Source: Anthoceros angustus
Taxonomy: Eukaryota > Plantae > Anthocerotophyta
Direction of reading: 5' to 3'
Assembly: GCA_010909165.1 (NCBI GenBank)
Contig: MU008165.1
Location: forward strand, 1,922,001 to 1,986,000
Length of the DNA: 64,000 bases
Shown here: piece after piece, positions 9,593 to 57,489 of the stretch
Position numbering within the stretch: the first letter of the stretch is position 1
Layout of the letters: each line of letters begins with the position of its first letter
Notes under the pieces: model-generated
Told to the model about the DNA's origin: nothing
The model's database searches: none
Seen by the model: only the letters and a program-made list of their open reading frames with translations
Position numbers and translations under genes: made by a program

Positions 9593-10867
9593 TCACTGGA
9601 GAAGTTGAGCTACAGTCCTTGCCATGGCCAAGGACGAGGTCAGGCCCGGAGACTCGATGCCAAAAAGTTGAACCAACCCAGGAATTTTGTGCACATCGGA
9701 AGCCTGCACCACGAAATCCGAAGCTCCCTGCCCGGGCCCGGAGAGCTTGGGCCGGATGCCGGCGTAGTCAGGAACCAAGCAATTGTTGGGCAGAGCTGGG
9801 TAGTATTTCCTGATCTCACCGTAGAATCTTTCCGCTCTGGAGGAATCAACAGAGTAATCAAACTGCTCGATGTTGCCAGCATCGTCGGGAGGGGTGGGAA
9901 GCCACTCCACATCAGGTCCAAACCTTGTCTGCCCAGCCATGTCCATGGTGACATGCACTCCGATCCCGCCTTCTTCAGGGACCGGGTAGATGAGCCGAGA
10001 GAAGGGAGGTCTTCCCGCTCCTGACAGGCTGAAGTAGCATCCTCGAGCGTAATGGCGGCCCGGGATGGAATCAGGAGGGACTCCCTGCATGGCCTTGGCC
10101 AGGGATTGTGCATGCAAGCCTGCAGAATTGATGACAGTCCTGGCAGACAGCGTGAAGTGCGGGCAGGATGATGGGGAGGAGAGCTTGAGCGCTAGGGTAT
10201 CGCACACCCGCAGCAGGATCCCCTCCGAACTGGCCTTGCCTCCCACAACAGCACAATTCAGAGCGATGGAAGCTCCTAGGCGTTCAGCATCTCCCTGGAG
10301 GGCCAGCATCAGGGCGTGGCTGTCAACAATCCCGGTGTTGGGTGACCACAGGGCCTGGATGCAACGGAGCTCAGGTTCCATGTTCGTGGCAGCCGAGGGA
10401 CCCACCATCTCCAGGCCCGCCGCCCCGTTCTGCTGCCCCGTCCTGAGCAGTCTCTCCAGGACCTGGACTTGCTCCTGGGATGTTGCAACAATCAGCTTGC
10501 CGAGGCGCTTGTGCGGAACTCCATGCTCTTGGCAGTAGGCGTACATGGCCTGGCTTCCTTCCACACACAGTCTGGCCTTGAGGGAGCCTGGAGGGTAGTA
10601 TATCCCGGCATGGATGACCTCACTGCTGCGGGAGCTGGTGCCGGTGCCGATGCTCGGGGCTGCTTCCAGCACTAGGACGTCCCTGCCTCGCATGGCCATG
10701 AGGCGGCCCACAGCCAAGCCCACAACTCCAGCTCCCACCACTACACAGTCTGCTTTCTCCGTGCCTCCACTACTACAGAAGCTCGCGGCTGTTCCATGCC
10801 TGCTTCTCAATTCAGTCCTCCTCATCAGCTGCCATGCAGCAGCCGGCAGGGAAGTTTTGCTGCCCAT
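9593..10867 (-). CDS. L2HGDH: L-2-hydroxyglutarate dehydrogenase, mitochondrial-type, intronless
   Basis: FAD-binding motif VVGAGVVGLAVG, TSSRSSEVIHAGIYY, LIYPVPEEGGIGVHVT, FGPDVEW, YAGIRPK, LFGIESPGLTSSLA. First in-frame ATG at 10867 gives an Arg/Ser-rich presequence-like N-terminus. Confidence 0.93.
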   Translation of the reverse strand: MGSKTSLPAAAWQLMRRTELRSRHGTAASFCSSGGTEKADCVVVGAGVVGLAVGRLMAMRGRDVLVLEAAPSIGTGTSSRSSEVIHAGIYYPPGSLKARLCVEGSQAMYAYCQEHGVPHKRLGKLIVATSQEQVQVLERLLRTGQQNGAAGLEMVGPSAATNMEPELRCIQALWSPNTGIVDSHALMLALQGDAERLGASIALNCAVVGGKASSEGILLRVCDTLALKLSSPSSCPHFTLSARTVINSAGLHAQSLAKAMQGVPPDSIPGRHYARGCYFSLSGAGRPPFSRLIYPVPEEGGIGVHVTMDMAGQTRFGPDVEWLPTPPDDAGNIEQFDYSVDSSRAERFYGEIRKYYPALPNNCLVPDYAGIRPKLSGPGQGASDFVVQASDVHKIPGLVQLFGIESPGLTSSLAMARTVAQLLQ

Positions 10868-11093
10868 GATCAATTGGACTGTAAATGTGCCTGCCCTTGC
10901 TCTTGTAAGAGCCTCGTGAGCCTGCAGATTTGCAGTCGCAGATTCTTTTAGGACCTGGCGGAAAAAGTAATGTGGAATGCATGGTCTTGGGAAGGTGCTG
11001 TGATGCTGTTTATATGCAGGACGGAGGAACAGTGCCCTTTTTTTGCGCTTCACTGCATTGCGAGGATGCGAGTTTCTTGTCTACCTCACGATG

Positions 11094-29632: not shown

Positions 29633-32600
29633 ATGTGGATGGCCAACAGGATGCATAAGTTGGTGCTGGAGACTGGGGCGCAGCAATTTCTGACGTCGGT
29701 TGTGAACTTCGCGTTCTTGGTGTTGTTCTTGTGTGAGGCTGTGCTTACGCAGTTGAGGTCCCGGAAGGCGCGAGTTGGGCTCGTCAGGGAGCCTGTTAGT
29801 GGGAATGGAGTCGCGAAGGTGGTGCTTCGGCGTGGAGTGTTGTTCAAGGCAGTGTTTGGGTGCTGCCTTGTGCTCGCTGTGGCGAATTTTGCAACCGTTG
29901 CAGCGATCGTGTTTGAGAGGAGTAGTTTGAGATATCCTGATGACGTTTATGGGTTTGCAGTTCAGGGATTGGCGTGGCTGGTAATGAGCATAGTCGCGGA
30001 GAGGACAGCAAGGGCTGGGAAAGGATACTATCCTAGACTGTTACGGGCGTGGTGGATTGTCTCGTGCTCGTTTGCTCTGTTAACTCTCGGGTTTGGCATC
30101 TATGCCCTTGTTGAAAGTCCTGCCAGTTTTGGGATCCGAGATTGTTTGGTCGCGTTGTCAGCTCCTGTGAGTCTTTTCCTTTTCGTGGTCGCTGTTTATG
30201 GCAAGACGGGTGTAGACGTTGTTGAGGATGACTTGCACGAGCCTCTGCTTTCGTCTCCGCGGGACAATGACGTCGAGGATGATAAGGTTACTCCTTACAG
30301 TAGAGCTGGAATTTGGAGTCTGGCTACCATTTCCTGGCTCAATCCTGTTCTTGCAGTGGGGGCTCGTAAACCTCTGGAAGCAGGGGACCTGCCCTTACTG
30401 GCATGTGAGCATCGGGCAAAGACAAATTATCGTCTGCTTCAGGGTGCTTGGAATGAGTTGAAGCTGGAAGCACCTGAATCACGTCCTTCTCTTGTGAAGG
30501 GCATCGTCAGAACCTACTGGAGAAATGCAGCTTGGAATGCTTTGTTCGCGGGAACAAATGCATGTGCAGCCTTTGTTGGTCCCTATCTTATCAGTGACTT
30601 TGTGGAGTTCTTGGGCGGGCAGCAGCGTTTTGCTCACGAAGGCTATGTGCTGGCAGTTGCCTTCTTCGGTGCCAAGTTGGTGGAGTCGTTGACGCAGAGG
30701 CAGTGGTACCTGGGAACAGAGTTTCTGGGACTGCGGGTTCGTTCGGCTGTGACTGGATTTGTCTACTGGAAGGGGTTGCGCTTGTCGAGTGAGTCCAGGC
30801 GAAATTACACAGCTGGCGAGATCATCAACTATATGGCTGTCGACGTCCCTCGAATTGGAGATTTCGCCTGGTATATGCATGACATTTGGATTCTGCCTCT
30901 GCAAATCACTCTCGCACTGGCTATTCTTTACAAAAGCGTTGGTGTAGCCACATTGGCAACATTGGCTGCAACTATCTTTGCTTTGACTGCAACCTCGCCC
31001 ATCGGGAGAATCATTGAGAGGTATCAAGGTCGCTTGATGAAAGCAAAGGATGAGAGGATGAAAGCGACAGCTGAGGCACTACGCAGCATGAGAACGCTCA
31101 AATTACATGCGTGGGAGAATAGATATCTTCAGAAAATAGAGCGGTTAAGGAAAGATGAAGGTGTTTGGCTTGCCAAGAGCTTGTACACCATGTGCTTCAA
31201 CACTTTCATATTCTGGGCTGCTCCCACTTTCGTTTCTGTCTTCACATTTGCTACTTGCATGATCCTTGGTATACCTTTAACTGCAGGCAGAGTCTTGTCA
31301 GCTCTAGCCACCTTCAGGGTTCTGCAGGAACCCTTGAGAAACTTTCCTGATCTTGTGTCAACAATTGCACAGACCAAAGTTTCGTTGAGCCGTATTTGGC
31401 ATTTTCTTCAGGAGCCTGAGATTCGGTCTGATGCCGTCACCAAGCTTTCCACGGACTCTGGAATTGGAGAAAGCCTGGGCCCTAGTATGGCAATTGAAGT
31501 CGACGGAGGAATATTCAGCTGGGACACGTCTCTGGATATGCCTACCCTTCGCCAGGTGGATTTGCAGATTAAGACAGGAGAACGGGTAGCTGTATGTGGA
31601 ATTGTTGGCTCGGGAAAGTCGAGTTTGTTATCATGCTTTCTTGGTGAGATTCCAAAGATATCTGGCACTGTAAGATCACTATTCCTTTTCCACTTCTTCC
31701 ACGTTCGTGTGACAGGTAACTGGCGGTAGGAGTGCCTGCATTCTGTAAAGTGCTGTTCAAAATTACTTTTACCATTTTATTGAAATTAAGTGAGTGTGTG
31801 CAGGTGCGTGTGAAAGGAAGGACAGCTTATGTTGCTCAGACGCCCTGGATACAAAGTGGATCGGTTCAGGATAACATTCTTTTTGGAAGTCTGATGGACC
31901 GTGCCAAATATGAAAGAGTTTTGGAGGTATGCCAATTGAAGAAAGACTTGGAGCTCTTCACTCATGGTGATAAAACAGAGATTGGTGAGCGTGGTATTAA
32001 TCTGAGTGGAGGGCAAAAGCAACGTATTCAACTTGCACGTGCAGTGTATCAAGACGCAGATATCTACATTTTGGACGATCCCTTCAGTGCTTTGGATGCT
32101 CAAACGAGTAGCCAAATTTTTCAGGTGTGCACATTTTGGAATGACCCTCTTAATGCTTCGATGCCCAATGATCTTCCTTCCTTGCTGTTAGTGAAATGGC
32201 TGACAATGCTTTCTCACTTTGGGTGCAGGAGTGCATTCTCCAAGAGCTGGGCCCGAAGACTGTCGTATTCATCACTCACCAGGTGGATTTTTTGCCCGTT
32301 GCTGACCACATCCTGGTAAGGAACCTACTTCTGGTAGGGTTGTCCTCCACTGTGGTTCATGACACTGGTTGATCTGTACTGCTGTGATGGAGAAGTCCTA
32401 GTTCCTTTCGGCATGATGTGCATTTCGACATCGTTTGCAAGTGGTTTCAGAGAATGTGGTACTGGTGAACTCTGTCTGAATGCTTGTAGTAGCTTTGTAT
32501 CAACAGGTGCTACGTGATGGAGAAATAGTTGAGCGTGGGAAGTATGATGAGCTCTTGCAAGCAGGAACGGACTTCACCAGCTTGGTGAGTGCGCATACGG

Positions 32601-35384
32601 AGGCTGTTGATGCCATGGAATCTCAGGCTAAGGAGGATGAAGATGAGGAAGAGGAAGAGGAAGAGGAAGAGGAGCTGCTTGTAGAAGATTGCATCACTAC
32701 AATCACAGAGAACGGTCATGAAATCGAAAACTCTCCATGTATCTCTGATGATGTTCATAAGGAGAAGCCTGCAGCCGAGACTATTGATGAGAAGAAAAAG
32801 AGGAAAAAGCTAAAGAAGAAAGGGAAGGGCAAGAAGCAGCTTGTGCAAGAAGAGGAAAGAGCTCGGGGCAATGTCAGCAGGCATGTCTATACATCCTACC
32901 TGACAGCCGTTTACGGTGGAGCACTTGTTCCGTTGGTCTTATTGGCTATGATCATGTTCCAGGTGCTGCAAATAGCTGGTAACTGGTGGATGGCATGGGC
33001 GACGCCCACTACAGTAGACGAGAAAGCCAAGATCAGTAATGGTACCCTTATAGGCATCTATACAGCACTGGCATTTGGAAGTGCATTTTTTGTTTTCGTA
33101 AGGGCCGCACTGGTTGCCACAGTTGGTCTGCTCACGGCCAATAAAATGTTCTATACTATGATCGGATCCATCTTTCGAGCACCCATGTCCTTCTTTGATT
33201 CCACACCAACCGGCCGCATCCTCAATAGGGTACGCCCTGCACTACCGTGACTAGGATTGTCTTGGCTCCTGCGGCATGTTGTCAGGATTACTCTCCTAAA
33301 CTTCCTCGTGTCTTCTTTGCTGATGTTGTGGACTGTCTATGAAAGTGCAGGCTTCAACAGACCAAAGCGCATTGGACTTGGAAGTCCATGCTAAGTTTCG
33401 GGCATTTGGATCCATGACGGTCCAACTTTTTGCTATCATATGTGTGATGGCCCAAGTGTCATGGGTGGTTATACTTCTTTTCACACCAGTCATCGGACTA
33501 TGCATACTCATACAGGTTCTTCCCCTGTTAAGCTCCTTTCAAATTTTCGCTTAGTTCATGTGAACTAAGCGAAGCGAAAATTCCTGAAGACTTAGATGCC
33601 AAGCAGTGATGAAAGTGACTCTTGGAATCGCTGATCCACTTTAGATATTTGTTTGATGCAGCGATATTATATTTCCTCGGCCAGAGAATTAGCTCGGCTT
33701 GTCGGCATACAAAAGTCTCCAACAATTCATCACTATGGGGAATCTATTGCTGGAGCAGCAACTATACGAGGATTTTCTCAAGACCAGCGATTTATGGCAA
33801 CAAATCTCAAGCTACTCGATACTTATGCCCAGCCCTTGTTCCATAATTTTGCAGCCATAGAGTGGCTGATTTTCCGAATGGAGCTGTTGTCTGTCCTGAT
33901 TTTCGCAATTATGTTGTTGCTGGTGGTCAGCTTTCCCAACTCGGTTGATCCCAGTGAGTGTCTACATACAACGCAGAGTGGAGCTTGAGGATGGAGATGT
34001 TGGTTACAGTTGATCTACAATTGAGGTCGGTTGTCTGCAGGCATGGCTGGACTTGCAGTTACCTATGGCCTTCAACTTAATTCCAGGCTGTCCAAGTGGG
34101 TGTGGGAGCTTTGTAACTTGGAGAACAAAGTTATTGCAGTTGAGAGAATTCAACAGTACAGCAATCTCCCGAGTGAAGCCCCTGCCATCATTGAAAACAA
34201 TCGGCCTCCTAAGGATTGGCCAATTCAAGGAATAGTGGATCTTAGAAACTTGCAGGTCAAGAAGGCAGCCATCACAAAGAACAGTGAAGAAATGTCTGTT
34301 ATAGTTTCCTTTTCGTCCTTTAACTAACGTCTCACTTCGATCTTGCAGGTGCGCTACAATGCACACGCGCCTTTAGTTCTGCATGGAGTATCCTGTACGT
34401 TTCCTGCTCGGAGTAGGATCGGAATTGTTGGCCGCACTGGATGTGGCAAATCAACACTTATCCAGGCCCTCTTCCGCATGGTCGAACCAGCTGGTGGGGA
34501 GATTTTAATAGATAGCCTGAATATCTCCAGCATTGGTCTCCATGATCTGCGTTCCAGGTTGAGCATCATTCCACAGGATCCTTTGCTATTCGAAGGGACA
34601 GTACGGGGCAATTTGGATCCCCTTGAAGACTATTCTGATGCAGAAATCTGGGAGGTCAGTGTGGTCACACCTCTATAGTTGCCTTCCATCCAGTTTGGAC
34701 ATCTGGTATTATCTCATAACAAATTCTGCATCTCCTGCAGGCTCTGGATAAGTGTCAGCTAGGAGGGATCGTTCGTGCCAAAGACGAAAAGCTGGATGCT
34801 CCAGGTACACACAGTGCAGGATGCAGTGTCTGTTGTCCGAGTGTCTCGAGGATGTGCATCCACTGTGAATTCTTCTGATTTCGTTTGTCATGCCTTGCCT
34901 TGCAGTGTCTGAGAATGGTGAAAACTGGAGTGTTGGGCAGCGCCAACTTCTTTGTCTGGGCAGAACACTCTTGAAGCGCAGACGGATTTTGGTACTGGAT
35001 GAAGCTACAGCGTCAGTGGATACATCAACTGACAGTGTGATGCAGCGGACAATCCGAGAAGAGTTTGTGGACTGCACTGTGATAACTGTGGCGCATCGAA
35101 TTCCCACCGTCATCGACAGTGACTTAGTGTTGGTCCTAAGTGATGGTATTTCACTGGAGTGGATGTTAACCTGCCAGTGGCCAGGGGATTTATTACTTCA
35201 GTTTAACTCCTCCTAACTATTGTTTGTCCTTGTGCACGCAGGAAGAGTGGCTGATTTTGACACACCGGCCAAACTTCTAGAGAACAAGTCATCGATGTTG
35301 TCTTTGCTCGTTAATGAATATTGTGCAAGAGCCGCAAACTTGTGCGACCTGGCAGCCAGCGGCCGTTCTGAAAATCGACTCTAG
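29633..35384 (+). CDS. ABCC5: ABC transporter C family (MRP), closest in motif to ABCC5/MRP5
   Basis: TMD0-TMD1-NBD1-TMD2-NBD2 layout. [24 protein letters not shown], Walker A GIVGSGKS and GRTGCGKS, signatures LSGGQKQR and WSVGQRQL, linker [10 protein letters not shown]. All introns checked are GT-AG. Stop at 35382-35384. Orthology to ABCC5 is by recalled motif similarity only. Confidence 0.9.
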
Positions 35385-35875: not shown

Positions 35876-38800
35876 CTACCTAGTCAGGGTATTTTTGAGT
35901 ACATTGTCTGAAACACCTGCTGCTTTACATCCTCCGTCCCATCGACGTGTCCACAAGCTACGTAAACTGAGGAGAAAATTGCTGCTCTTTCCTTGCTTAC
36001 GAGATGGGTCCATTCCCCCTTTGCTTGTCGTGTTACGGCCAGGGGTTGCAGGTTGGCGTGGTTCAGCTTCATCGGCTTCTGGGTCCTGCATGTTTTCCTC
36101 ATCTACTTCATCAACATCCTTATTCTTTGTTGAGCCCCATCCACCACTGAAAGAACTGCCTCTCCTACTTCTTCCTCCAGCCGGGACCGTCTTGGTTTTC
36201 TTGTCATTTGCCTCTTTAGAGTCTGTGGCTGGAACAGGAAGACGAGGTCCAACTCCGCCTGATGTCCTTAGGGGAACAGAAACACGTACGTCTTCCTTGT
36301 GGTCAGGCCAGATTGTGTCATCTGGAGATGAATCCCCTTCAATAGCAGAAGCAACCACCTCCACAGCTGCTGCAACCTGAACAAGGAGAGCAGCAGAATC
36401 AGACGTCATGCGATGAACGAACAAGGAAGACGAACCAACGGATAGACATGGGTCTTATTCCACCTCGGCCTCCTTGACTTTGCTTGCTAGCTCCTCCACT
36501 CCACTGAGAGACGTGGCTCGCCTGCGACGAGGTTTAGAAGATTTCGATGCTTTGACGGCTTCTGTGTCCACCAATGCAACACCTTCCAGGTTTCGATGGT
36601 TCCTCATGAGTTCCAGAAGCCGGGATGCTCTTTGCTGCGCTTTCGGACTACCCAAGAGCGCCATCTCCACAAGAGCCGGCAGGATTCCTTGTGCAGCCAT
36701 GGTTTTTTGTCGAAATTCAGGATCTGAGGTGAGCGAGAGAAGAATACCGGCAGCTTGCTCCTTTGCACTTTGAGATCCAGCCTGTATGTTTAGGCCATTA
36801 GATGTCATTGGTGCAGACAACATCGTAGTGAAAGCCTCAGTGAGGTGAGATGTTTACCTTCAGCACATGGAGAAGCACGGGGAAAGTCTCCGGAGCTGCT
36901 GCTACACCATCCCTCCCTTCCTGGGTCATGTAGAGGTGGCTCAATAGCAGCATGCCCTTGTCTCCTGCCTCCATAAAGTCTCGCTGGATGTGAACATAGA
37001 GAGGAGCAATGGCCCCTGCATGCACGATCTTCTGACGGTGTGGCTTGAAAATGGAGAGGTTGAGAAGCGCTCGGCACGCATCGGACCGGCCCTGAGTGGT
37101 CCCGTTCTTCAGAATATCAACGAGATGAGGAATGGCAGCTTCAAGATGAGGTTTCAAGGTGTCAGACGCAGCCAAAGACAGGATCACAGCTGTGGCACTT
37201 TCCCGGAGAGAGATGAAGGACTGTGGTCTGAGGAGGTCGATCAGCAGGGGCACACCGCCTTCTTCGTAAATGGTTAGCTTGTTCCTGAGACGAGAAGGAA
37301 CTGGATGAGCAAGGCCCATGTCGCAAAAGATGAGACGGGGAATGGCATTTTTGAATGAGGATGTGCATACCTGGTACAGCCTATAGCCAGGTTGAGCAGA
37401 GCCAATGCTGCAGTATGTCGGGTCCCCATGTCATGATCCGGCATGAGCAATCTCAGCAGAGGTGGTATTGCACCAGCCTCACTCAGCGCCTTCCGAGCAA
37501 GCTCTGAGTGCTTGGCTGCTGCTCTGACCTCCCGTACTGCAGAAAGTGGCGTGACTAATCCCAGCTCTGCTTGTTGCAGCCTCTCGACAATGCTGCTGTA
37601 CTCATATGCGTCATCCTCGGCATCCATGCTTATGGACGATCCGTGAGTCGGATCTGTAGACTCACGATCACATGCATCGAAGTTGGGGATTTGTAGCTTC
37701 CCGAACATGTGAGAGTTCATCAGTAGCTCTTCCGCCATCTCGGCAGCCGGAGACTTGCTCCTCTTATACAGAATGTGGGTTGCCGAGGCTGCAGAAGCAC
37801 TGCCGCTCAGGTACTCCTGGATGGTAGCGATGCTGGTGGTGTCAGTGGCCGTGTCTGGTCCACTGCCAGTGTCTGTAACAGCAGCGACAAGGGAGCTCCA
37901 TCAGTGACAAGCATCCAACACTCCAATCCCCCAGCAGCAGAGAAATGTTGCAGAGAATGTACCTGTGAAGGTGTCCGGTGGATCATCCATGGCATAATTG
38001 TAACTGGAGGCATCAGGCAAACTTTCAACACTTCGAGATCTGAGGGGAAACGACCGGGAGGAAGGCATCTGCACTGGAGGTCTGTTCCCAACTTCCGCCA
38101 TCGAGTGAGACCTTGGAGCAAGGTTTTTGCTGCTGCTAGTGCTTCCAACCGAACTGTACGACAGCTGAGAGATGTCATCTGACAGCACGTCTGGCTCTGC
38201 ATCGACAGGTTCAAAAAAGTGAATCTTCTTGGTAGTCCTACGAGATACCCCTCTGGTCCGAGGAAGATCCGGCTTCCCACCAGCCATGCCCGAGCCAACA
38301 TCGGATCGATTCATACTTCCCCAGGTACCACGATGCCCTTCAGCAGGACGCAACCCATACCCTCCACCTTCCGAGGACGACATATCATCACTACCACCAT
38401 CCCTCTGCTCCTCCCAGCCGTATGAGCCCTTGGAGTTCCCATCATTCCGCAGCCTGGGAGATCCAGTTCCCCTCACCAGCCTGGGAGACCCACTCATCAG
38501 GCCTCGGTTCCTGCTCCCAGCCTGGCCGATGTCACTGGAATCCACCTTTCCCACTCTAACTTCAGCTGGCCTTGCAGGAGCAACTCGTGGACTGTCAATG
38601 TCGCCGTGACCCAAGTACTGACCGGGCATCGCCCCAGCTTGCTGACCCCCACCTGTTCGTTTTTGTTATGCATACAGGCACACAGATTCATCAGCTTGCA
38701 GTTCGAACAACCGAACCCACCAACCCAGTGAGGGACAAATTATCCCACATTGCTCAGCTCAGCTATGGGACACATGGGAGAGAAGAACCCTAAGATTGAT

Positions 38801-39197: not shown

Positions 39198-39663
39198 GAA
39201 CACCTGCTGACAACAGTGCTATCAGAAGCACATGGTGGGCAGGAACCGCTGGCAGTGCACAGCGAGAAGCAGAATCAAACAATGGGCGCGAGAGCACAGG
39301 GCTTCTTCCGCCGGTCAATGCCTGCCCCCACGATTAAAGTAAATTGGGTGATTGTCGTCACCACAAGCCTGGATTGAGTGGTGCCTAACTGGGGATGTGC
39401 TGGCACTCTGTCAGGAGTGGGGTTGTTGGATTCTGATTAGAAAAAGGTGGAGTTTTGTCCAAGGAATCTCGTCATCTGGCACAGGCAGGCGGCTCTCTCA
39501 GCAGTTCGAGGGACGGACAGCTGAGGATTCCTACTCTCCGGGAGCAAGTAGCCTCGCTCCCACCAACCGCCCTGCCCTGGGCAGCGTGCAAAATGGGTCT
39601 TTCCCCGGGCCTGGTTCCTTCTCTCGGCTGCCTGGAGGCGGACTGTGACCCCGCATCTCAAGC

Positions 39664-41016
39664 ATGAAGGGCCTCCTCATCTTCGTGCGCCTGCCTGTGG
39701 CTGGCAAGGTGAAGGCTCGGCTGGCAAGCCATGTGGGGCTTCAGGCGGCCAACAATTTCTACCGGGCCTGCGCTGAGCACACCATTGTGGAGTCTGCACG
39801 GTGAGATCTCGGGTGCATTTCGTTGGGTGCTTGCTGCTTCCTTGGCAGTGGCTTCGATGAGGACGGGAAGGGAAGGGAAGGGAAGATTTTTGTTCACCTC
39901 TGCTCTGTTCTTCGCACATTGGGCTCGCACAGGCTGGAGGGCATCACCAGGTTCATCTACTTCGCAGACAGCGAGACCGCAGAGCAGGTGCAGCAGTGGA
40001 TGCAGAGCATCAACCAGCAGCAGACTCTTGAGCTGCGGCCTCAGGTATGACCTGCTCCGCTGTGCTGCTGCTTCCTCCTGCAATGGATGGGTCTGGATCC
40101 GGAATTTCTCACCGAGTAGGAACGTGTGGTGGCAGCTCAGACGAGCACACCCGACCCAGGGCAGCGCATGTCGGATGCTCTCAAAGCTGTCTTCGCCATG
40201 GGAGCTGGCCAGGTACTCCAACACCCCACCACCTCCTCCTCCTCCTCCCCTACCATCACGTTCCGTCCCTCTCCTAACACACACGACATCACTCTATCCA
40301 TGTGCAGGCAGTGCTGATCAGCTCAGATGCCCCTGACTTGAGTGGTGAAGTCATCTCCAACGCATTCAAAGCTCTGGAAACCAGCGACGTAAAGCATCCA
40401 CCCTCTGTCCCCGTCCAAGCCATGCTCTAGTACTTCCTGTGCACCCACGCTCCTCACAACACTCACTCACTCACTCACTCACTCTCGCCCTCCTTCACTG
40501 TACAGGTGGTACTGGGCCCTGCTCACGATGGAGGCTACTGCGTAATAGGACTGCGAACATTCCGCCCGTCCCTGTTCCAGGTCTGCACGTACTAACACTG
40601 CATCACTTTCACCCTACTCTCCCTCCCGCCGTGTACTGTTTATGCAACTTGATGCAACAGTCTCACATCCACAACACGACCCAACAGTGCCATCCACAAC
40701 ACGACCCACCAGTGCCATCCACCATGACCCACCTCCCTCTAACTCCTGCCACCCTTCGGGTGTTGCTTCCGTCCAGGGAATCTCGTGGAAGACAGACAAG
40801 GTGCTCCAGCAGACGGTGGATGCGGCCACAGCCGAGCACCTGAAGCTGGCCCTGCTGCCCGCCCTCTACAGCATCGGGACATACGCACAGCTGCAGGAGT
40901 GGGTGGAGCTTCCGGGCAGCAGGCACAGCCCGCTGCATCCGCTGGCCTGCAACCTGGTGCAGGAAAGCGCGGCCATGATGGACGCGCTTGCAGAGACAGG
41001 CTACACTTTCTCGTGA
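39664..41016 (+). CDS. DUF2064 / TIGR04282-like (CofC-like glycosyl/nucleotidyltransferase fold) protein, 6 exons, 238 aa
   Basis: Exons 39664-39800, 39933-40044, 40141-40212, 40308-40388, 40506-40580 and 40777-41016 (717 nt, all GT-AG). Family motifs LIFVRLPVAGKVKARL, DPGQRM, VLISSDAPDL, VLGPAHDGGYCVIGL, GISW. Confidence 0.85.
40668..40735. repeat. Imperfect ~26-bp tandem repeat in intron 5 of the DUF2064 gene
   Basis: CACAACACGACCCA(A/C)CAGTGCCATC repeated about 2.5 times. Confidence 0.65.
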
Positions 41017-41217
41017 CCTGCTCCACATGCCATGCCGCCCCGCATGCAGCCATGCAGCCATGCAGGCTTCCTTGTCCATCAATAAACCAGCGGTTAACGC
41101 CGTGATCGGCACTTGCACACGCTCCAATCCTCCGCTGCCTGATTGCCTGGCTTCCTGCTCGCCCCCACACACCGCACACCCTGTCCTCCAGACAGCTGGT
41201 GCCGTCCACACCTGTCC

Positions 41218-41253
41218 AGTTTCGCCAGTTTCGCCAGTTTCGCCGGTTTCGCC
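41218..41253. repeat. 9-bp tandem repeat (AGTTTCGCC) x4
   Basis: AGTTTCGCC-AGTTTCGCC-AGTTTCGCC-GGTTTCGCC seen directly. Confidence 0.8.
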
Positions 41254-41551
41254 GCCCCTGCCCTCCCCGCCCTGCCGCCCGCACGCCGTGCAAATTCAAA
41301 ACTCCAGACGGGACCTGCCTTAGATCTGGACGGCTTTCCTTCCTAGACCTAGCTATTCTTGTTGACCGGGCTGCTGCCTGCATTAAATCTTTTTTCTCGT
41401 GGACCTGCTCGCCATTTTAGTGAGAACAGAGCGAGATATATTCGCCTGCTCGCCATTCGTTGTCACCGGTATTATTATTTTAATAGCCTAAAAAGTTCAT
41501 GAATGTAAATACCTAGATAGTAGAGAAGAAGAAGATGATACTACCGTATAC

Positions 41552-42521: not shown

Positions 42522-45152
42522 ATGTCTCTCCGGCCGAATGCCCGCACGGAGGCCAGGAAGAAGAGCTACAAGCTGGCCGTGGACACCGATGAGGCCCGCA
42601 GGAAGAGGGAGGACAATATGGTGGAGATCCGGAAGAACAAGCGGGAAGAGAGCCTGCTCAAGAAGCGCAGGGAGGGTATGCAGGCTCAGTCGTATGCGGT
42701 CTCCGTTCCTTCATCCGTGATCGAGAAAAAGGTAAGCACCTCTGCTCTGCCTACTTGCCGCCTTGCTCAGCTGGCCCGGTGGCCGGATCTGGCGTCTGGT
42801 GTGCTGCTCGGAGGCCTTTTGAGCCGGACGTGAGTCGGTAGGTGTCTGGATGTGGAGCCGTCCGCTAAGACTTGCTATCTCTCTTTTTTTCCAGCAGCTG
42901 GAGAGCTTGCCTGCTATGGTAGCTGGTGTGTGGTCAGATGATCCCGTCCAGCAGCTGGAGGCCACCACTCAGTTCCGGAAGTTGCTGTCGATAGGTATGT
43001 CGTAGCTCCCGCGCTGTACTGCGCTCCCTCTCTCCCAGCGTGATCGGGGCCGGGATTGGGTAGTGAGTGTTGTCGGTTTCGTCCTTGGATGATCCTTGTC
43101 TGTGGTGCTGTGGATCGCGGTCTTAACCGCGGGTACCGGTTGCTCTTGGCAGAGCGAAGCCCTCCGATCGAGGAAGTTATTGCTGCAGGTGTGGTGCCCC
43201 GATTTGTGGAGTTTCTGCTTCGAAATGAATTCCCTCAGCTCCAGGTAAGTGCCAGTGTAATGTTTTGCATGGTATCTGTCCCAAGTCGGGCAGTTGTGTA
43301 GGGGCGCTGGTCTGACTTGCGCACTGTCGATCGTCAGTTTGAGGCGGCGTGGGCGTTGACCAACATTGCATCGGGGACGTCTGAACACACTCGAGTTGTC
43401 ATCCACCATGGTGCTGTCCCTATCTTTGTGCAGCTCCTCAGGTCCCAGAGTGATGATGTCCGGGAGCAGGTAACTCACTTGCTGTCTGGCTCGCCCTGCT
43501 TTTCGTTTTGTTTACCCTTGTACTGTACTGCGGTTTTCACAGTGAGGCCTTTGATTTTTGCACCGAATTTTCAGGCTGTCTGGGCTCTTGGAAACGTGGC
43601 TGGAGACTCTCCTAAATGTCGGGATCTTGTGCTCAACAGTGGTGCCCTTATGCCACTGCTTGCCCAGCTTCATGAGAATGCCAAGCTCTCTATGTTACGT
43701 AATGCAACATGGACGCTGTCGAACTTCTGTCGTGGGAAGCCACAGCCCCCATTTGAACAGGTAGGAAGGCCTTCTTGACGTGTCTGAGGTTTCCTGTCCG
43801 ATGTCTTTGCAGTGTTTGTATCTGGATTGCAGACTGATTTTCTTTGTACGATGCAGTCAAAGCCTGCTCTTCCAGCTCTGCAGCGCTTGATCCACTACAA
43901 CGATGAGGAGGTTCTTACAGATGCCTGTTGGGCGCTTTCGTATCTTTCGGACGGCACAAATGATAAGATACAGGCTGTAATTGACGCTGGCGTCTGCAGG
44001 CGCCTTGTCGAGCTACTTATGTGAGCCGCTCTGCCTCCTCTAAGATACAGTGGCCTCACTGATGGTTGGAGGCTCATGGTTGTGTTGATGAATTCCAAGT
44101 TTTTCTCATTCTCATCTTTGAATCTGTGGTTTATCATGCAGCCATCCTTTTCCAGCTGTTCTCATTCCAGCTCTTCGAACTGTTGGCAACATTGTTACTG
44201 GCGATGATGTGCAGACTCAGGTTCAACTCCGCATCTCTGCTGCTGCTTATTTGCTAAATCAGTTGACCTGATATCTTTGACGGTGATTAAAGATATCATG
44301 CTGGACCCAAGGATATTATATCTGACCTTTGTGTTTTTGCTTTGTTCAGTTCATCATCAACAACAACGCACTTCCATACCTTCTGAGGCTTCTTACCAGC
44401 AGTCTGAAAAAGAGCATTAAGAAAGAAGCTTGCTGGACCATTTCTAACATAACTGCTGGAAATAAGGATCAGATCCAGGTGAGTATTGGAGCACACTACT
44501 GTTTACTGGTTCACAGCATCAAAATCATCGCCTTACATAATTTTCTGTTGCCAGGCTGTGATTGATGCCAACATCATTCCCCCTTTGGTATCTCTGCTCG
44601 CTAATGCTGAGTTCGACATTAAGAAAGAAGCAGCCTGGGCAATCTCCAACGCAACTTCTGGTGGCACCCATGAACAGATCAAGTAACATCTCATGAACTT
44701 GTCTCCTCGTGAATAGGTTCTGCCGCTCCTGAAGCTCTGAGTTTAACAATCATGTCTATGCCCGTTCCAGGTACCTTGTGAGCCAAGGTTGTATCAAGCC
44801 CCTATGTGATCTTCTGACTTGCTCAGACAGCAGGATTGTGACGGTCTCTTTGGAGGGTCTGGAAAACATATTGAGGATTGGGGAGGCAGAGAAGGATCTT
44901 GGAACCACTGGTCAAATCAACCTGTATGCCAGGTACATTGATGAAGCAGAAGGAGTGGAGAAGATTGAAGCACTGCAAAATCATGAGAACACAGAGATAT
45001 ATGAAAAAGCCGTTAAGATTCTTGAAAATTATTTTCTGGATGACGAAGAAGAAGCAAATGCAGTTGCCAATGCTGATGGTAATCAGCAAGCTGGCTTTAC
45101 ATTTGGTGGGAACCCACCACCCGTTCCATCAGGCGGCTTCAATTTCGGTTAA
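42522..45152 (+). CDS. IMPA: Importin subunit alpha
   Basis: IBB domain [17 protein letters not shown]...[29 protein letters not shown] repeats [40 protein letters not shown]-terminus [23 protein letters not shown]...GGFNFG. Confidence 0.96.
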
Positions 45153-54828: not shown

Positions 54829-57489
54829 ATGGAAGGAGCTGTTGGTGACGACGGCAGCTCGCGAGCTGCCATGCAGTTGCGATCCAGCACGGAGTGCAAA
54901 AATGAAACATGCGTTGGACAACAGCCTTGTTGTCATTGTGATGAGGAAGAATCCATGTGTTTGACACTTGAGCAACACCTACAATCCAGTGAGCTTGAGC
55001 TGGGAGCTGAGGAAGCGGCCAACCAAAAGACCAAGAGCCTAGTTATCTGCTGTGACCTGGGTGATGGTGAGAAGGCACATGCCTGCCAGTCTGGCGATGA
55101 TGAGCCTAGCCTGAACGACGAGGAGCTGCAGCTGGAAGACGATGGCAGCAGTATCAACATTCCGGAAAGCGGCACTCACATCTGCCGCCTGTGCAAGAGG
55201 AGGTTCTCGTCTGGACGAGCCTTGGGAGGCCACATGCGGGCCCATGGCTCTCTGTCACTGGAGGATGGCGGCGGCACTTCTTGTTGCAATGGTGTGGATG
55301 ACAAGGAGCAGGCCGGGGATGGTGGTGGCAGCTCGGAACTTGACTGCTCCAGCAGTGGGCTTCCCCTCTTTTTTCCCAAGGACATCGCCAGGGTGTCAAT
55401 GCAAGCACTGCAAGGCCCACCCAAGGACTTTGACATCGGCAAGCAACACCTCGGCATGGATCAGGACGAAGAGAAGGAGCACAGTGCAAAAAGCAGCACG
55501 GAAGCAAGAGAGGAGGAAGAAGGAGGGGCCGAGGCACATGCAGTGACCACCACCCACGTTTGCGAGGCCTGTGACAAGGAGTTCGAAAATGCCGCGGACC
55601 TGGACCTCCACAGGAAGGTGCACCCTCAGTACGGCCTGCGCAGCAACCCGAAACGCAGCCGCAGATTCATCGACCAGGACTACACATTCGATGAAGCAAC
55701 ATCCAGTGTGCCGGTGAAGAAAACCACCTCCATCTTCAGCGAGAAGGCTCGGGCATGCACAGAGTGCGGCAAGGAATTCTCTTCCTGGAAGGCCTTGTTT
55801 GGGCACATGAGATGCCATCCCGAGAGAGAGTGGAGGGGAATTCAGCCCCCAGAAAACGCCTCTAAGCAAGGCAGTGGAAGCAGCTCCGCACCGCTACCAC
55901 GGCGCAGGAAAAAGCCTCCCAGCAGTAACATAGCCGCAGCCGCCGCCGCCACAGCCACCACTCCCGTCACCACTGCTGCTGCTGCTGGATCACGTGACCT
56001 GCACACAGTCTGCGAGCCGAAAGAGGGTCAGAGTCATGACATGAAGGTGAGCTTCTCGGATGATGAGAGTGATACTGAGAGCATCGAGGCAGCCTACATG
56101 AATGGTAGCATGCACCCCAGCTTTCACGGCTGGATGACTGGGAAACGCTCGAAGCGGCCCCGACAATTTGTGCGCTCACTGCAAGATGCTTGTCAACATG
56201 CTTCCGATGGCACCCCATCCACCACCACACCCACAGAGATCAAGGAGGAACAGGACATGGCCAACTGCCTCGTCATGTTAGCATGTGCTGGGCGAACCCT
56301 CAGGCGGACCAGCTCTGATCAGCAACTGGACAAAGACTCCACCTCTTTGGAATCGAAGGATCACGGCTTTCAGATGGACACCAAGGACTACATGGAGACC
56401 TCCACAGGAACCATGTCTCCTAGGAATGGCACTCGTGTCTTGCCACAGGCCAAGTATGACAGGGAGATGGACAGGGATTTGGATGGGGGGAGCCTGTGTG
56501 AGGAGAACGAGGAGGAATTCGACGGGGTTGATCCGGGAGCTGGAGGGTGTAGGCTCAAGTATGAGTGTACTACATGTAAGAGGATCTTCAAGTCTCACCA
56601 AGCTTTAGGGGGCCACCGTGCCAGTCATAAAAAGGTTAAAGGTTGCTTTGCCAGAACAAACATGAGCACTGGCTTGCAAGAGATTCAGGAAGATGGGATC
56701 AGTGAAGAGTTCCTCAAGTCCAAGGAGCTACTGTCGACTTTCGAGCTTCAGGATACCTCTCAAAGTGAAGACTGGAAAGAGACATACCTGACCAAAGAAG
56801 ACAGTGAAGAGCTCATGAGTGTGGCAAGGAAATCCAAGGGCCATGAGTGCTCCATCTGCCATCGAGTCTTCTCCTCTGGCCAAGCTCTGGGAGGCCACAA
56901 AAGATGTCACTGGGGAGGCGCTGGAACCAGCTCGGATATGATTAGTGTCGTATCAAGCAACACTAAGCAGCCAATGCTCCAGTTGAGTCAAACACCGACT
57001 TTCAAAAAAATCCTTGATTTGAATTTGCCAGCCCCCGTAGACGACCCAGATTGTGTGCATGACCTAGCAGCCCCTTTTCTCCCAGCATATGTTAATAGAC
57101 TTGCACCCAGGTCAAGTCTGGCAAGTGCTGAAAGGACCATTGACTTCCTTGTTCACAGGAAAACTAGGAATAGCCTTGATATCCTAGATGATCCAACCAA
57201 ATTACACGACGAGGATGAGGAGTGTAACCTTTATAGCACAGAAGAGTGTGTTGCTCCAAATCAAGCTGATGAAGAAGTGGAAACCTCGTTGATGAGCAAC
57301 CAAAATGGCATGGATTTGACATCAAAAACGGGCTTAATGGAAGATGGTATAGACTTCAGTTGCACAAGATACTTGAGGTGCAACATCTGTGACAGACTGT
57401 TCACCTCCATGGAAGCCTTCTGCAACCACCGTAAAACCCATGCTCCCATGATGTCGTCTGTTCCTGGCCTCACTCCAATCTCTGCTTAA
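54829..57489 (+). CDS. C2H2 zinc-finger protein (QALGGH/C1 family) with EAR motif, intronless, 886 aa
   Basis: Fingers with RALGGHMRAH, WKALFGHMRCH, QALGGHRASH and QALGGHKRCH plus two non-QALGGH CxxC..H..H fingers. YGLRSNPKRS motif, L-box DMANCLVMLA, EAR motif LDLNLP. In-frame stop upstream at 54772. Confidence 0.92.
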   Translation: MEGAVGDDGSSRAAMQLRSSTECKNETCVGQQPCCHCDEEESMCLTLEQHLQSSELELGAEEAANQKTKSLVICCDLGDGEKAHACQSGDDEPSLNDEELQLEDDGSSINIPESGTHICRLCKRRFSSGRALGGHMRAHGSLSLEDGGGTSCCNGVDDKEQAGDGGGSSELDCSSSGLPLFFPKDIARVSMQALQGPPKDFDIGKQHLGMDQDEEKEHSAKSSTEAREEEEGGAEAHAVTTTHVCEACDKEFENAADLDLHRKVHPQYGLRSNPKRSRRFIDQDYTFDEATSSVPVKKTTSIFSEKARACTECGKEFSSWKALFGHMRCHPEREWRGIQPPENASKQGSGSSSAPLPRRRKKPPSSNIAAAAAATATTPVTTAAAAGSRDLHTVCEPKEGQSHDMKVSFSDDESDTESIEAAYMNGSMHPSFHGWMTGKRSKRPRQFVRSLQDACQHASDGTPSTTTPTEIKEEQDMANCLVMLACAGRTLRRTSSDQQLDKDSTSLESKDHGFQMDTKDYMETSTGTMSPRNGTRVLPQAKYDREMDRDLDGGSLCEENEEEFDGVDPGAGGCRLKYECTTCKRIFKSHQALGGHRASHKKVKGCFARTNMSTGLQEIQEDGISEEFLKSKELLSTFELQDTSQSEDWKETYLTKEDSEELMSVARKSKGHECSICHRVFSSGQALGGHKRCHWGGAGTSSDMISVVSSNTKQPMLQLSQTPTFKKILDLNLPAPVDDPDCVHDLAAPFLPAYVNRLAPRSSLASAERTIDFLVHRKTRNSLDILDDPTKLHDEDEECNLYSTEECVAPNQADEEVETSLMSNQNGMDLTSKTGLMEDGIDFSCTRYLRCNICDRLFTSMEAFCNHRKTHAPMMSSVPGLTPISA

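Follow-up and report, generated by a model that had tools for sequence, protein, structure and literature searches.

We analysed a 64-kb stretch of DNA from the hornwort Anthoceros angustus, hereafter the window, which contains a gene of the DUF2064/TIGR04282 family at positions 39664-41016 on the plus strand. Read directly from positions 39300-41500, the gene has six exons separated by GT-AG introns. Its parts and flanking signals are as follows:

39646-39648, plus strand: in-frame TGA, 15 nt 5' of the ATG of the gene (from the sequence and the list of open reading frames)
39664-39800, plus strand: exon 1, 137 nt, starting with the ATG and ending in phase 2 (TIGR04282 profile positions 1-39, 33.3 bits)
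39933-40044, plus strand: exon 2, 112 nt, ending at the invariant Q of the family (from alignment to orthologues)
40141-40212, plus strand: exon 3, 72 nt, with D-P-G-Q-R-M (from the acceptor favoured by homology; also 72 nt in Calypogeia and Klebsormidium)
40308-40388, plus strand: exon 4, 81 nt, with the S-D-A-P-D motif (PF09837 positions 63-89, TIGR04282 positions 99-125)
40506-40580, plus strand: exon 5, 75 nt, with G-P-A-H-D-G-G-Y-C-V-I-G-L (PF09837 positions 90-114; 68% identity with Calypogeia)
40777-41016, plus strand: exon 6, with G-I-S-W-x-T, L-Y-S-I-G-T and the TGA stop (TIGR04282 positions 151-187)
41081-41086, plus strand: AATAAA, a possible polyadenylation signal 65 nt past the stop codon (from the letters only)

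The reading frame of 717 nt is intact over the six exons, and all ten splice sites are canonical. Introns 1-5 have the form GT..CAG and, with the 40141 acceptor, lengths of 132, 96, 95, 117 and 196 nt. A preliminary description of this DNA had proposed a six-exon model with five introns and four sequence motifs; direct reading recovers all of these, the motifs being P-V-A-G-K-V-K-A-R-L, D-P-G-Q-R-M, S-D-A-P and G-P-A-H-D-G-G-Y. The first is a nucleotide-binding loop of the form P-x-x-G-K-V-K-x-R-L; it lies in exon 1, which matches Calypogeia exon 1 (137 nt) in length and phase. Two in-frame acceptors had been pointed out for exon 3, at 40120 and 40141, and each is indeed a real AG that preserves the frame. 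Use of 40120 adds seven residues (ERVVAAQ) with no counterpart in any homologue. We favour 40141, since it gives the 72-nt exon 3 that is common to the window gene, Calypogeia and Klebsormidium. The upstream in-frame TGA at 39646-39648 excludes any N-terminal extension encoded within exon 1, so that the protein has no transit peptide, as previously suggested; it should be cytosolic. The surrounding genes are eukaryotic: ARM-repeat genes lie to either side, and genes for an ABC transporter, a C2H2 zinc-finger protein and a RED-like protein are also present. These neighbours indicate that this is nuclear DNA and not contamination. We conclude that this is a real plant gene, carried in the nucleus and spliced.

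Several other features of the window were recorded. The ABC transporter gene (29633-33250, plus strand), 6-10 kb upstream, is full-size, with very long exons and two matches each to ABC_membrane and ABC_tran. ARM-repeat coding pieces at 36837-38629 (minus strand) and 43317-43778 (plus strand) flank the DUF2064 gene, point away from it and may be two paralogues in inverted orientation. Many C2H2 zinc fingers are encoded in a single 886-aa open reading frame at 54829-57489 (plus strand). An uninterrupted 486-aa frame at 9593-11053 (minus strand) contains a full-length DAO FAD-dependent oxidoreductase domain (201 bits); because it is intronless while other genes of the genome are spliced, it might be another bacterial-type gene. 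Tandem repeats are present in intron 1 of the DUF2064 gene ((GGAAG)5, 39861-39885), in intron 4 ((CACT)6, 40460-40484), in intron 5 (a 25-nt unit repeated 2.8 times, 40666-40733) and in the 3' flank ((CCAGTTTCG)4, 41216-41253). An Rfam search of the window gave no match.

The assignment to DUF2064/TIGR04282, previously made from motifs, was evaluated by scoring the exons one at a time against profiles. Exon 5 alone scores 32.0 bits on Pfam PF09837 (positions 90-114), above the gathering score of 25.8 bits, and exon 4 scores 19.4 bits (positions 63-89). Against NCBIfam TIGR04282, a model that NCBI rates as a 'hypothetical equivalog', exons 1, 4, 5 and 6 cover the profile (1-189) colinearly, at positions 1-39, 99-125, 126-150 and 151-187. 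Their scores (33.3 + 18.7 + 30.9 + 15.5) give 98.4 bits for exons scored apart, the 134-bit cut-off of this model being meant for a whole protein. Exons 2 and 3 have no match alone in the single-exon search, and they fill the profile gap between exons 1 and 4 by way of alignment to orthologues; exon 2, for example, aligns with residues 48-81 of the proteins P0003 and P0005 and residues 59-92 of the Klebsormidium protein P0006 (see below). That exon ends abut exactly in an independent profile is beyond chance, and confirms the family assignment together with the splice sites. In the nucleotide loop of the window protein, L-P-V-A-G-K-V-K-A-R-L-A, the K and R correspond to residues found in 199 and 200, respectively, of 201 family members. 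The orthologues P0003, P0005, P0006 and P0009 pass the TIGR04282 cut-off, with 151-192 bits against the required 134. No window exon matches TIGR03552, the model for CofC of F420 biosynthesis (cut-off 105 bits), and the orthologues score 22-49 bits on it, indicating that they are not CofC and that the likeness is one of fold rather than family membership.

We searched for relatives of the window protein in large protein collections. An exhaustive search of 1.84 billion representative proteins with exon 6 yielded one true relative, P0003, a 241-aa protein of the leafy liverwort Calypogeia fissa (CAM6119476.1) with 44% identity over the whole exon. Three other matches were long repetitive proteins with many short matched stretches, and were taken as spurious. 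With P0003 as the query, a collection of 5.8 billion clusters gave 349 matches. The eukaryotic ones were Calypogeia, P0005 (80% identity), Klebsormidium nitens (KFL_006570060, P0006; 49%) and the trebouxiophyte Nannochloris 'desiccata' (Ndes2526B_g01151, P0009; 40%). The other sequences among the best 120 of the 349 are bacterial, with 31-45% identity, and the bacterial matches are often titled 'rSAM/selenodomain-associated transferase 1' or TIGR04282. Relatives from mosses, Marchantia, lycophytes, ferns or seed plants were absent from the P0003 matches in the 5.8 billion clusters, where they would have ranked near the top; this bears out the earlier remark that no angiosperm homologue is known, the only eukaryotes found being of liverwort type, Klebsormidium and Nannochloris. 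P0005 is a liverwort-like protein encoded without interruption on a Logan contig of 1137 nt, where a stop codon in frame precedes its ATG; the contig thus resembles a spliced mRNA, and its start agrees with that of the window model.

Every exon of the window gene has its best or near-best match in Calypogeia (P0003 or P0124), the mRNA-derived P0005 or Klebsormidium P0006, and over 211 aligned sites the window protein is 53% identical to the Calypogeia protein and 47% to that of Klebsormidium. Exon 6 has 41-44% identity with Calypogeia residues 158-239 and includes a C-terminal tail that is common to liverworts only. Neither the window protein nor another hornwort relative was found in the protein collections (the 1.84 and 5.8 billion sets, and a word search with the exon 6 open reading frame). 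The searchable literature contains no mention of DUF2064, and none of TIGR04282 in plants. Likewise, the horizontal-transfer list of the Anthoceros angustus genome paper does not include the gene in those parts of its text and supplementary files that were available. The gene is a new plant representative of a known family, and apparently one that had not been described before.

The exact exon chains of the annotated orthologues were rebuilt and compared with the window model:

Window gene (stop codon left out; 40141 acceptor): exons of 137/112/72/81/75/237 nt
Calypogeia: exons of 137/106/72/81/75/252 nt
Klebsormidium: exons of 161/115/72/81/75/175/548 nt

Introns 1-5 interrupt the same residues in all three genes, in phases 2, 0, 0, 0 and 0, and exons 3-5 have identical lengths (72/81/75 nt). 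Nannochloris has one intron in the same phase as intron 1 and 0-2 residues away from it, depending on where a small gap is set. The positions shared with Klebsormidium indicate that the gene and its introns are older than the split between Klebsormidiophyceae and land plants, and that the acquisition was not a hornwort or bryophyte event. The Klebsormidium gene has, in addition, a sixth intron and a 180-residue C-terminal extension (P0006 residues 226-409; L002, 13020-14669) for which there is no Pfam match.

Phylogenetic analysis gave a consistent picture of the green members and a less consistent one of their bacterial neighbours. A careful maximum-likelihood tree was built from 94 sequences, whose green-lineage members are four proteins, the window protein not being among the rows. 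In it, the green-lineage members form a single clade with moderate support (bootstrap 87, SH-aLRT 85; 97/86 for streptophytes), and branching inside the clade follows the species tree. A FastTree of 201 rows likewise has one green clade, with no further sequence inside it. In both trees this clade stands beside a cyanobacteria-rich clade with weak support, and in a quick tree it joins a candidate-division FCPU426 bacterium, far from cyanobacteria. Since the bacterial neighbours differ between trees, a cyanobacterial or plastid origin is neither shown nor excluded. Thus, the tree of cyanobacterial and other bacterial homologues proposed in the preliminary description returns a single green clade and a donor lineage that varies from tree to tree. 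The idea of an endosymbiotic or horizontal acquisition retained in seed-free plants stands in so far as the origin is bacterial and ancient and no seed-plant relative was found; the trees do not discriminate between endosymbiotic and horizontal routes.

A family so overwhelmingly bacterial naturally raises the suspicion that hornworts acquired the gene recently by horizontal transfer, or that bacterial DNA contaminates the assembly. Five spliceosomal introns placed as in the liverwort and Klebsormidium refute these explanations, and the eukaryotic genes on both flanks and the single green clade that branches like the species tree also argue against them; we consider them extremely improbable. 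Judged by its introns and phylogeny, the gene is not a recent transfer and is inherited from early green algae. We propose that it would have entered the green lineage from bacteria in a single ancient acquisition, at the latest before the Klebsormidiophyceae/land plant split and probably before the chlorophyte/streptophyte split. Vertical descent would have followed, with patchy retention in the hornwort A. angustus, leafy liverworts, Klebsormidium and a trebouxiophyte.

We examined the neighbourhoods of bacterial homologues for clues to function. The preliminary description had stated that the family co-occurs with the radical-SAM family TIGR04167 (ArsS) in prokaryotes, and ArsS is indeed encoded within 6 kb in 23 of 80 loci from named bacterial genomes; among the same 80 loci, 35 have a TIGR04283-like GT2 gene and 13 an ArsM-like gene. 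At one locus of a candidate-division FCPU426 bacterium (L035, 5176-6579, plus strand), TIGR04283 and TIGR04282 are fused in one 468-aa frame, beside genes for ArsS (TIGR04167, 414 bits), an ArsM-like methyltransferase and a PHO4 phosphate transporter. Genes for GT2, GT87, DUF2064 and ArsS lie in a row on two metagenome contigs (L007 and the P0007 contig). A nucleosidase gene that overlaps a bacterial homologue (L005) was considered as an arsenosugar clue and rejected, since it encodes futalosine hydrolase. We know of no enzyme that has been identified as finishing arsenosugar synthesis after ArsS. ArsS itself carries out the first committed step of arsenosugar synthesis, the adenosylation of dimethylarsenite to 5'-deoxy-5'-dimethylarsinoyl-adenosine (PMC13598754), and chlorophyte green algae make arsenosugars (PMC10456119). 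The genome search for partner genes (TIGR04167, TIGR04283 and ArsM) that had been proposed was run on the 64-kb window and the three eukaryotic loci L001-L003, and within these we detected no ArsS, ArsM-like methyltransferase, GT2 or GT87 gene. A protein search with ArsS is uninformative on plants, the matches listed being bacterial and at least 58% identical.

Structural comparison places the family among nucleotidyltransferases. A predicted model was made of the liverwort orthologue only, P0003 (pLDDT 92.8). Its matches are, in order, 3cgx, FbiD (6bwh) and CofC (7p97 and 2i5e), followed by cytidylyltransferases and sugar-nucleotide pyrophosphorylases, with TM scores of 0.77-0.80 against 3cgx and 0.60-0.79 against CofC/FbiD. 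In a search of structure entries with the family profile, the match to 3cgx had an E value of 5e-58, whereas CofC chains gave weak matches. These matches suggest two-metal nucleotidyl transfer, rather than Leloir glycosyl transfer, as the nearest chemistry to have been characterised. The earlier designation of the family as CofC-like transferases fits the predicted fold of the liverwort orthologue, the closest solved structures being CofC/FbiD nucleotidyltransferases rather than classical glycosyltransferases. The literature that we found reports no assay of any TIGR04282 protein. By analogy of fold, canonical members may be nucleotidyltransferases that activate a phosphorylated intermediate, plausibly an arsenoribose phosphate made downstream of ArsS, which the TIGR04283 GT2 glycosyltransferase partner would then transfer. 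The TIGR04283-TIGR04282 fusion fits two such consecutive steps. We also observed a 404-aa metagenome protein (P0065) in which a NUDIX hydrolase domain is joined to DUF2064, a hint of nucleotide-linked substrates for the family.

FbiD binds the substrate phosphate through two Mg2+ ions held by D116, D188 and D190, a motif that CofC also conserves (PMC6450877). Profile alignments place S-D-x-P-D of the TIGR04282 family on the first FbiD/CofC aspartate and pair its C-terminal D-I-D-T with D-x-D of CofC (7p97 and 2i5e). Aspartate occupies these three positions in 201/201, 201/201 and 199/201 family members. The corresponding codons of the window gene are:

40326-40328, plus strand: first metal-binding Asp, in exon 4, kept (D in 201/201 members)
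40870-40878, plus strand: S-I-G (agc-atc-ggg) in place of the D-I-D of the family, whose aspartates are the second and third of the two-metal site (from alignment)

Thus, the window protein lacks a complete three-aspartate metal site: the first Asp is kept, D-x-D is replaced by S-I-G, and no acidic residue near S-I-G could stand in for the lost pair. The window protein also has D-G-G-Y-C-V where the family sample has D-G-G-Y-Y-L, a motif whose invariance is overstated because the sample was partly collected with it. The possibility that a glycoside pathway works in this hornwort is weakened accordingly, two of the three conserved metal-binding Asp being absent from this copy. An active TIGR04282-type enzyme in an arsenosugar or related riboside pathway, with S-I-G tolerated or compensated, would account for the retained nucleotide loop, first Asp, D-G-G-Y and G-I-x-W-x-T, and for an overall rate of change like that of a working protein, and would agree with the arsenosugars of green algae. 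Nevertheless, we consider such an enzyme quite unlikely, given the near-invariance of the D-x-D pair across sampled members, the binding of two catalytic-site Mg2+ ions by the matching FbiD residues, the lack of an acidic substitute nearby and the absence of partner genes from the window.

The remainder of the protein looks constrained. It keeps 21 of the 25 invariant columns of our alignment (A2), and GC3 of its coding exons is 0.75, compared with 0.55-0.57 (about 0.56) for GC in its introns. With Klebsormidium as the outgroup, changes private to the window lineage are not in excess over those of the liverwort lineage (28 versus 25 for Calypogeia, p = 0.78). These observations, like the intact 717-nt frame and the wholly canonical splice sites, speak against a unitary pseudogene in early decay, in which function would have gone with the Asp replacement and the frame would be intact only because little time has passed. 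Such decay would explain the loss of two near-invariant catalytic-site residues and the change from D-G-G-Y-Y-L to D-G-G-Y-C-V; it would also agree with the placement of nine of the 28 private changes in exon 6, and with the absence of any annotated or transcript-derived A. angustus protein from the protein collections. On balance, we regard it as unlikely. The loss of two of three Asp from an otherwise constrained protein suggests instead that canonical metal-dependent catalysis was most likely lost or changed. In the window copy, the canonical catalysis has probably disappeared or changed, in a gene that otherwise looks constrained, and the product is probably retained in a non-catalytic or re-purposed role.

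Overall, we favour, with moderate confidence, an ancient bacterial acquisition followed by vertical descent and patchy retention in the green lineage, with a window copy whose canonical catalysis has been lost or changed and whose product is non-catalytic or re-purposed. A bolder extension, which we offer as a speculation of low probability, is that streptophyte algae and some bryophytes keep part of an arsenosugar or related organo-metalloid riboside pathway in which TIGR04282 would provide the nucleotidyl-activating step, the hornwort copy being a conserved, catalytically dead pseudoenzyme, for example a binding or regulatory partner.

The small intron-bearing green clade of TIGR04282 points to a very early entry of the gene into the ancestors of plants, and to its later loss from mosses, Marchantia-type liverworts and vascular plants. 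The Klebsormidium, Calypogeia and Nannochloris proteins are eukaryotic candidates with which to ask whether arsenic-sugar chemistry reaches streptophytes. The window copy represents a naturally occurring change of the active site. Should it prove to be expressed and conserved among hornworts, it would exemplify an enzyme turned non-enzyme; otherwise, it would be a record of loss in progress.

Compared with its green orthologues, the window protein has an N-terminus like those of the Calypogeia, Klebsormidium and Nannochloris proteins, which also lack a transit peptide; these orthologues and P0005 keep D-I-D-T, whereas the window protein does not. Its domain is common end to end with that of the bacterial TIGR04282/DUF2064 proteins, which carry the NCBI name 'arsenosugar biosynthesis glycosyltransferase' and of which 3cgx, from Desulfovibrio G20, is a solved example. 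Shared with bacterial TIGR04282 proteins are the P-x-x-G-x-V-K-x-R-L loop, S-D-x-P-D, D-G-G-Y and G-I-x-W-x-T. In contrast to its bacterial counterparts, the window gene is nuclear, has five introns and belongs to no operon, and its protein has S-I-G for the near-invariant D-I-D, P-D-P-G for G-D-L-G, and a C-terminal tail. With regard to the cyanobacterial ArsS/ArsM arsenosugar pathway, bacterial relatives of the gene adjoin ArsS, ArsM-like methyltransferases and TIGR04283, whereas the window and the three eukaryotic loci have no ArsS, ArsM-like, GT2 or GT87 partner. The CofC/FbiD guanylyltransferases of F420 biosynthesis are the closest characterised folds to the family, as judged from the liverwort model. 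The family shares with them the three-aspartate, two-Mg2+ site and the C-terminal D-x-D..DL motif, from which the window copy departs by lacking two of the aspartates.
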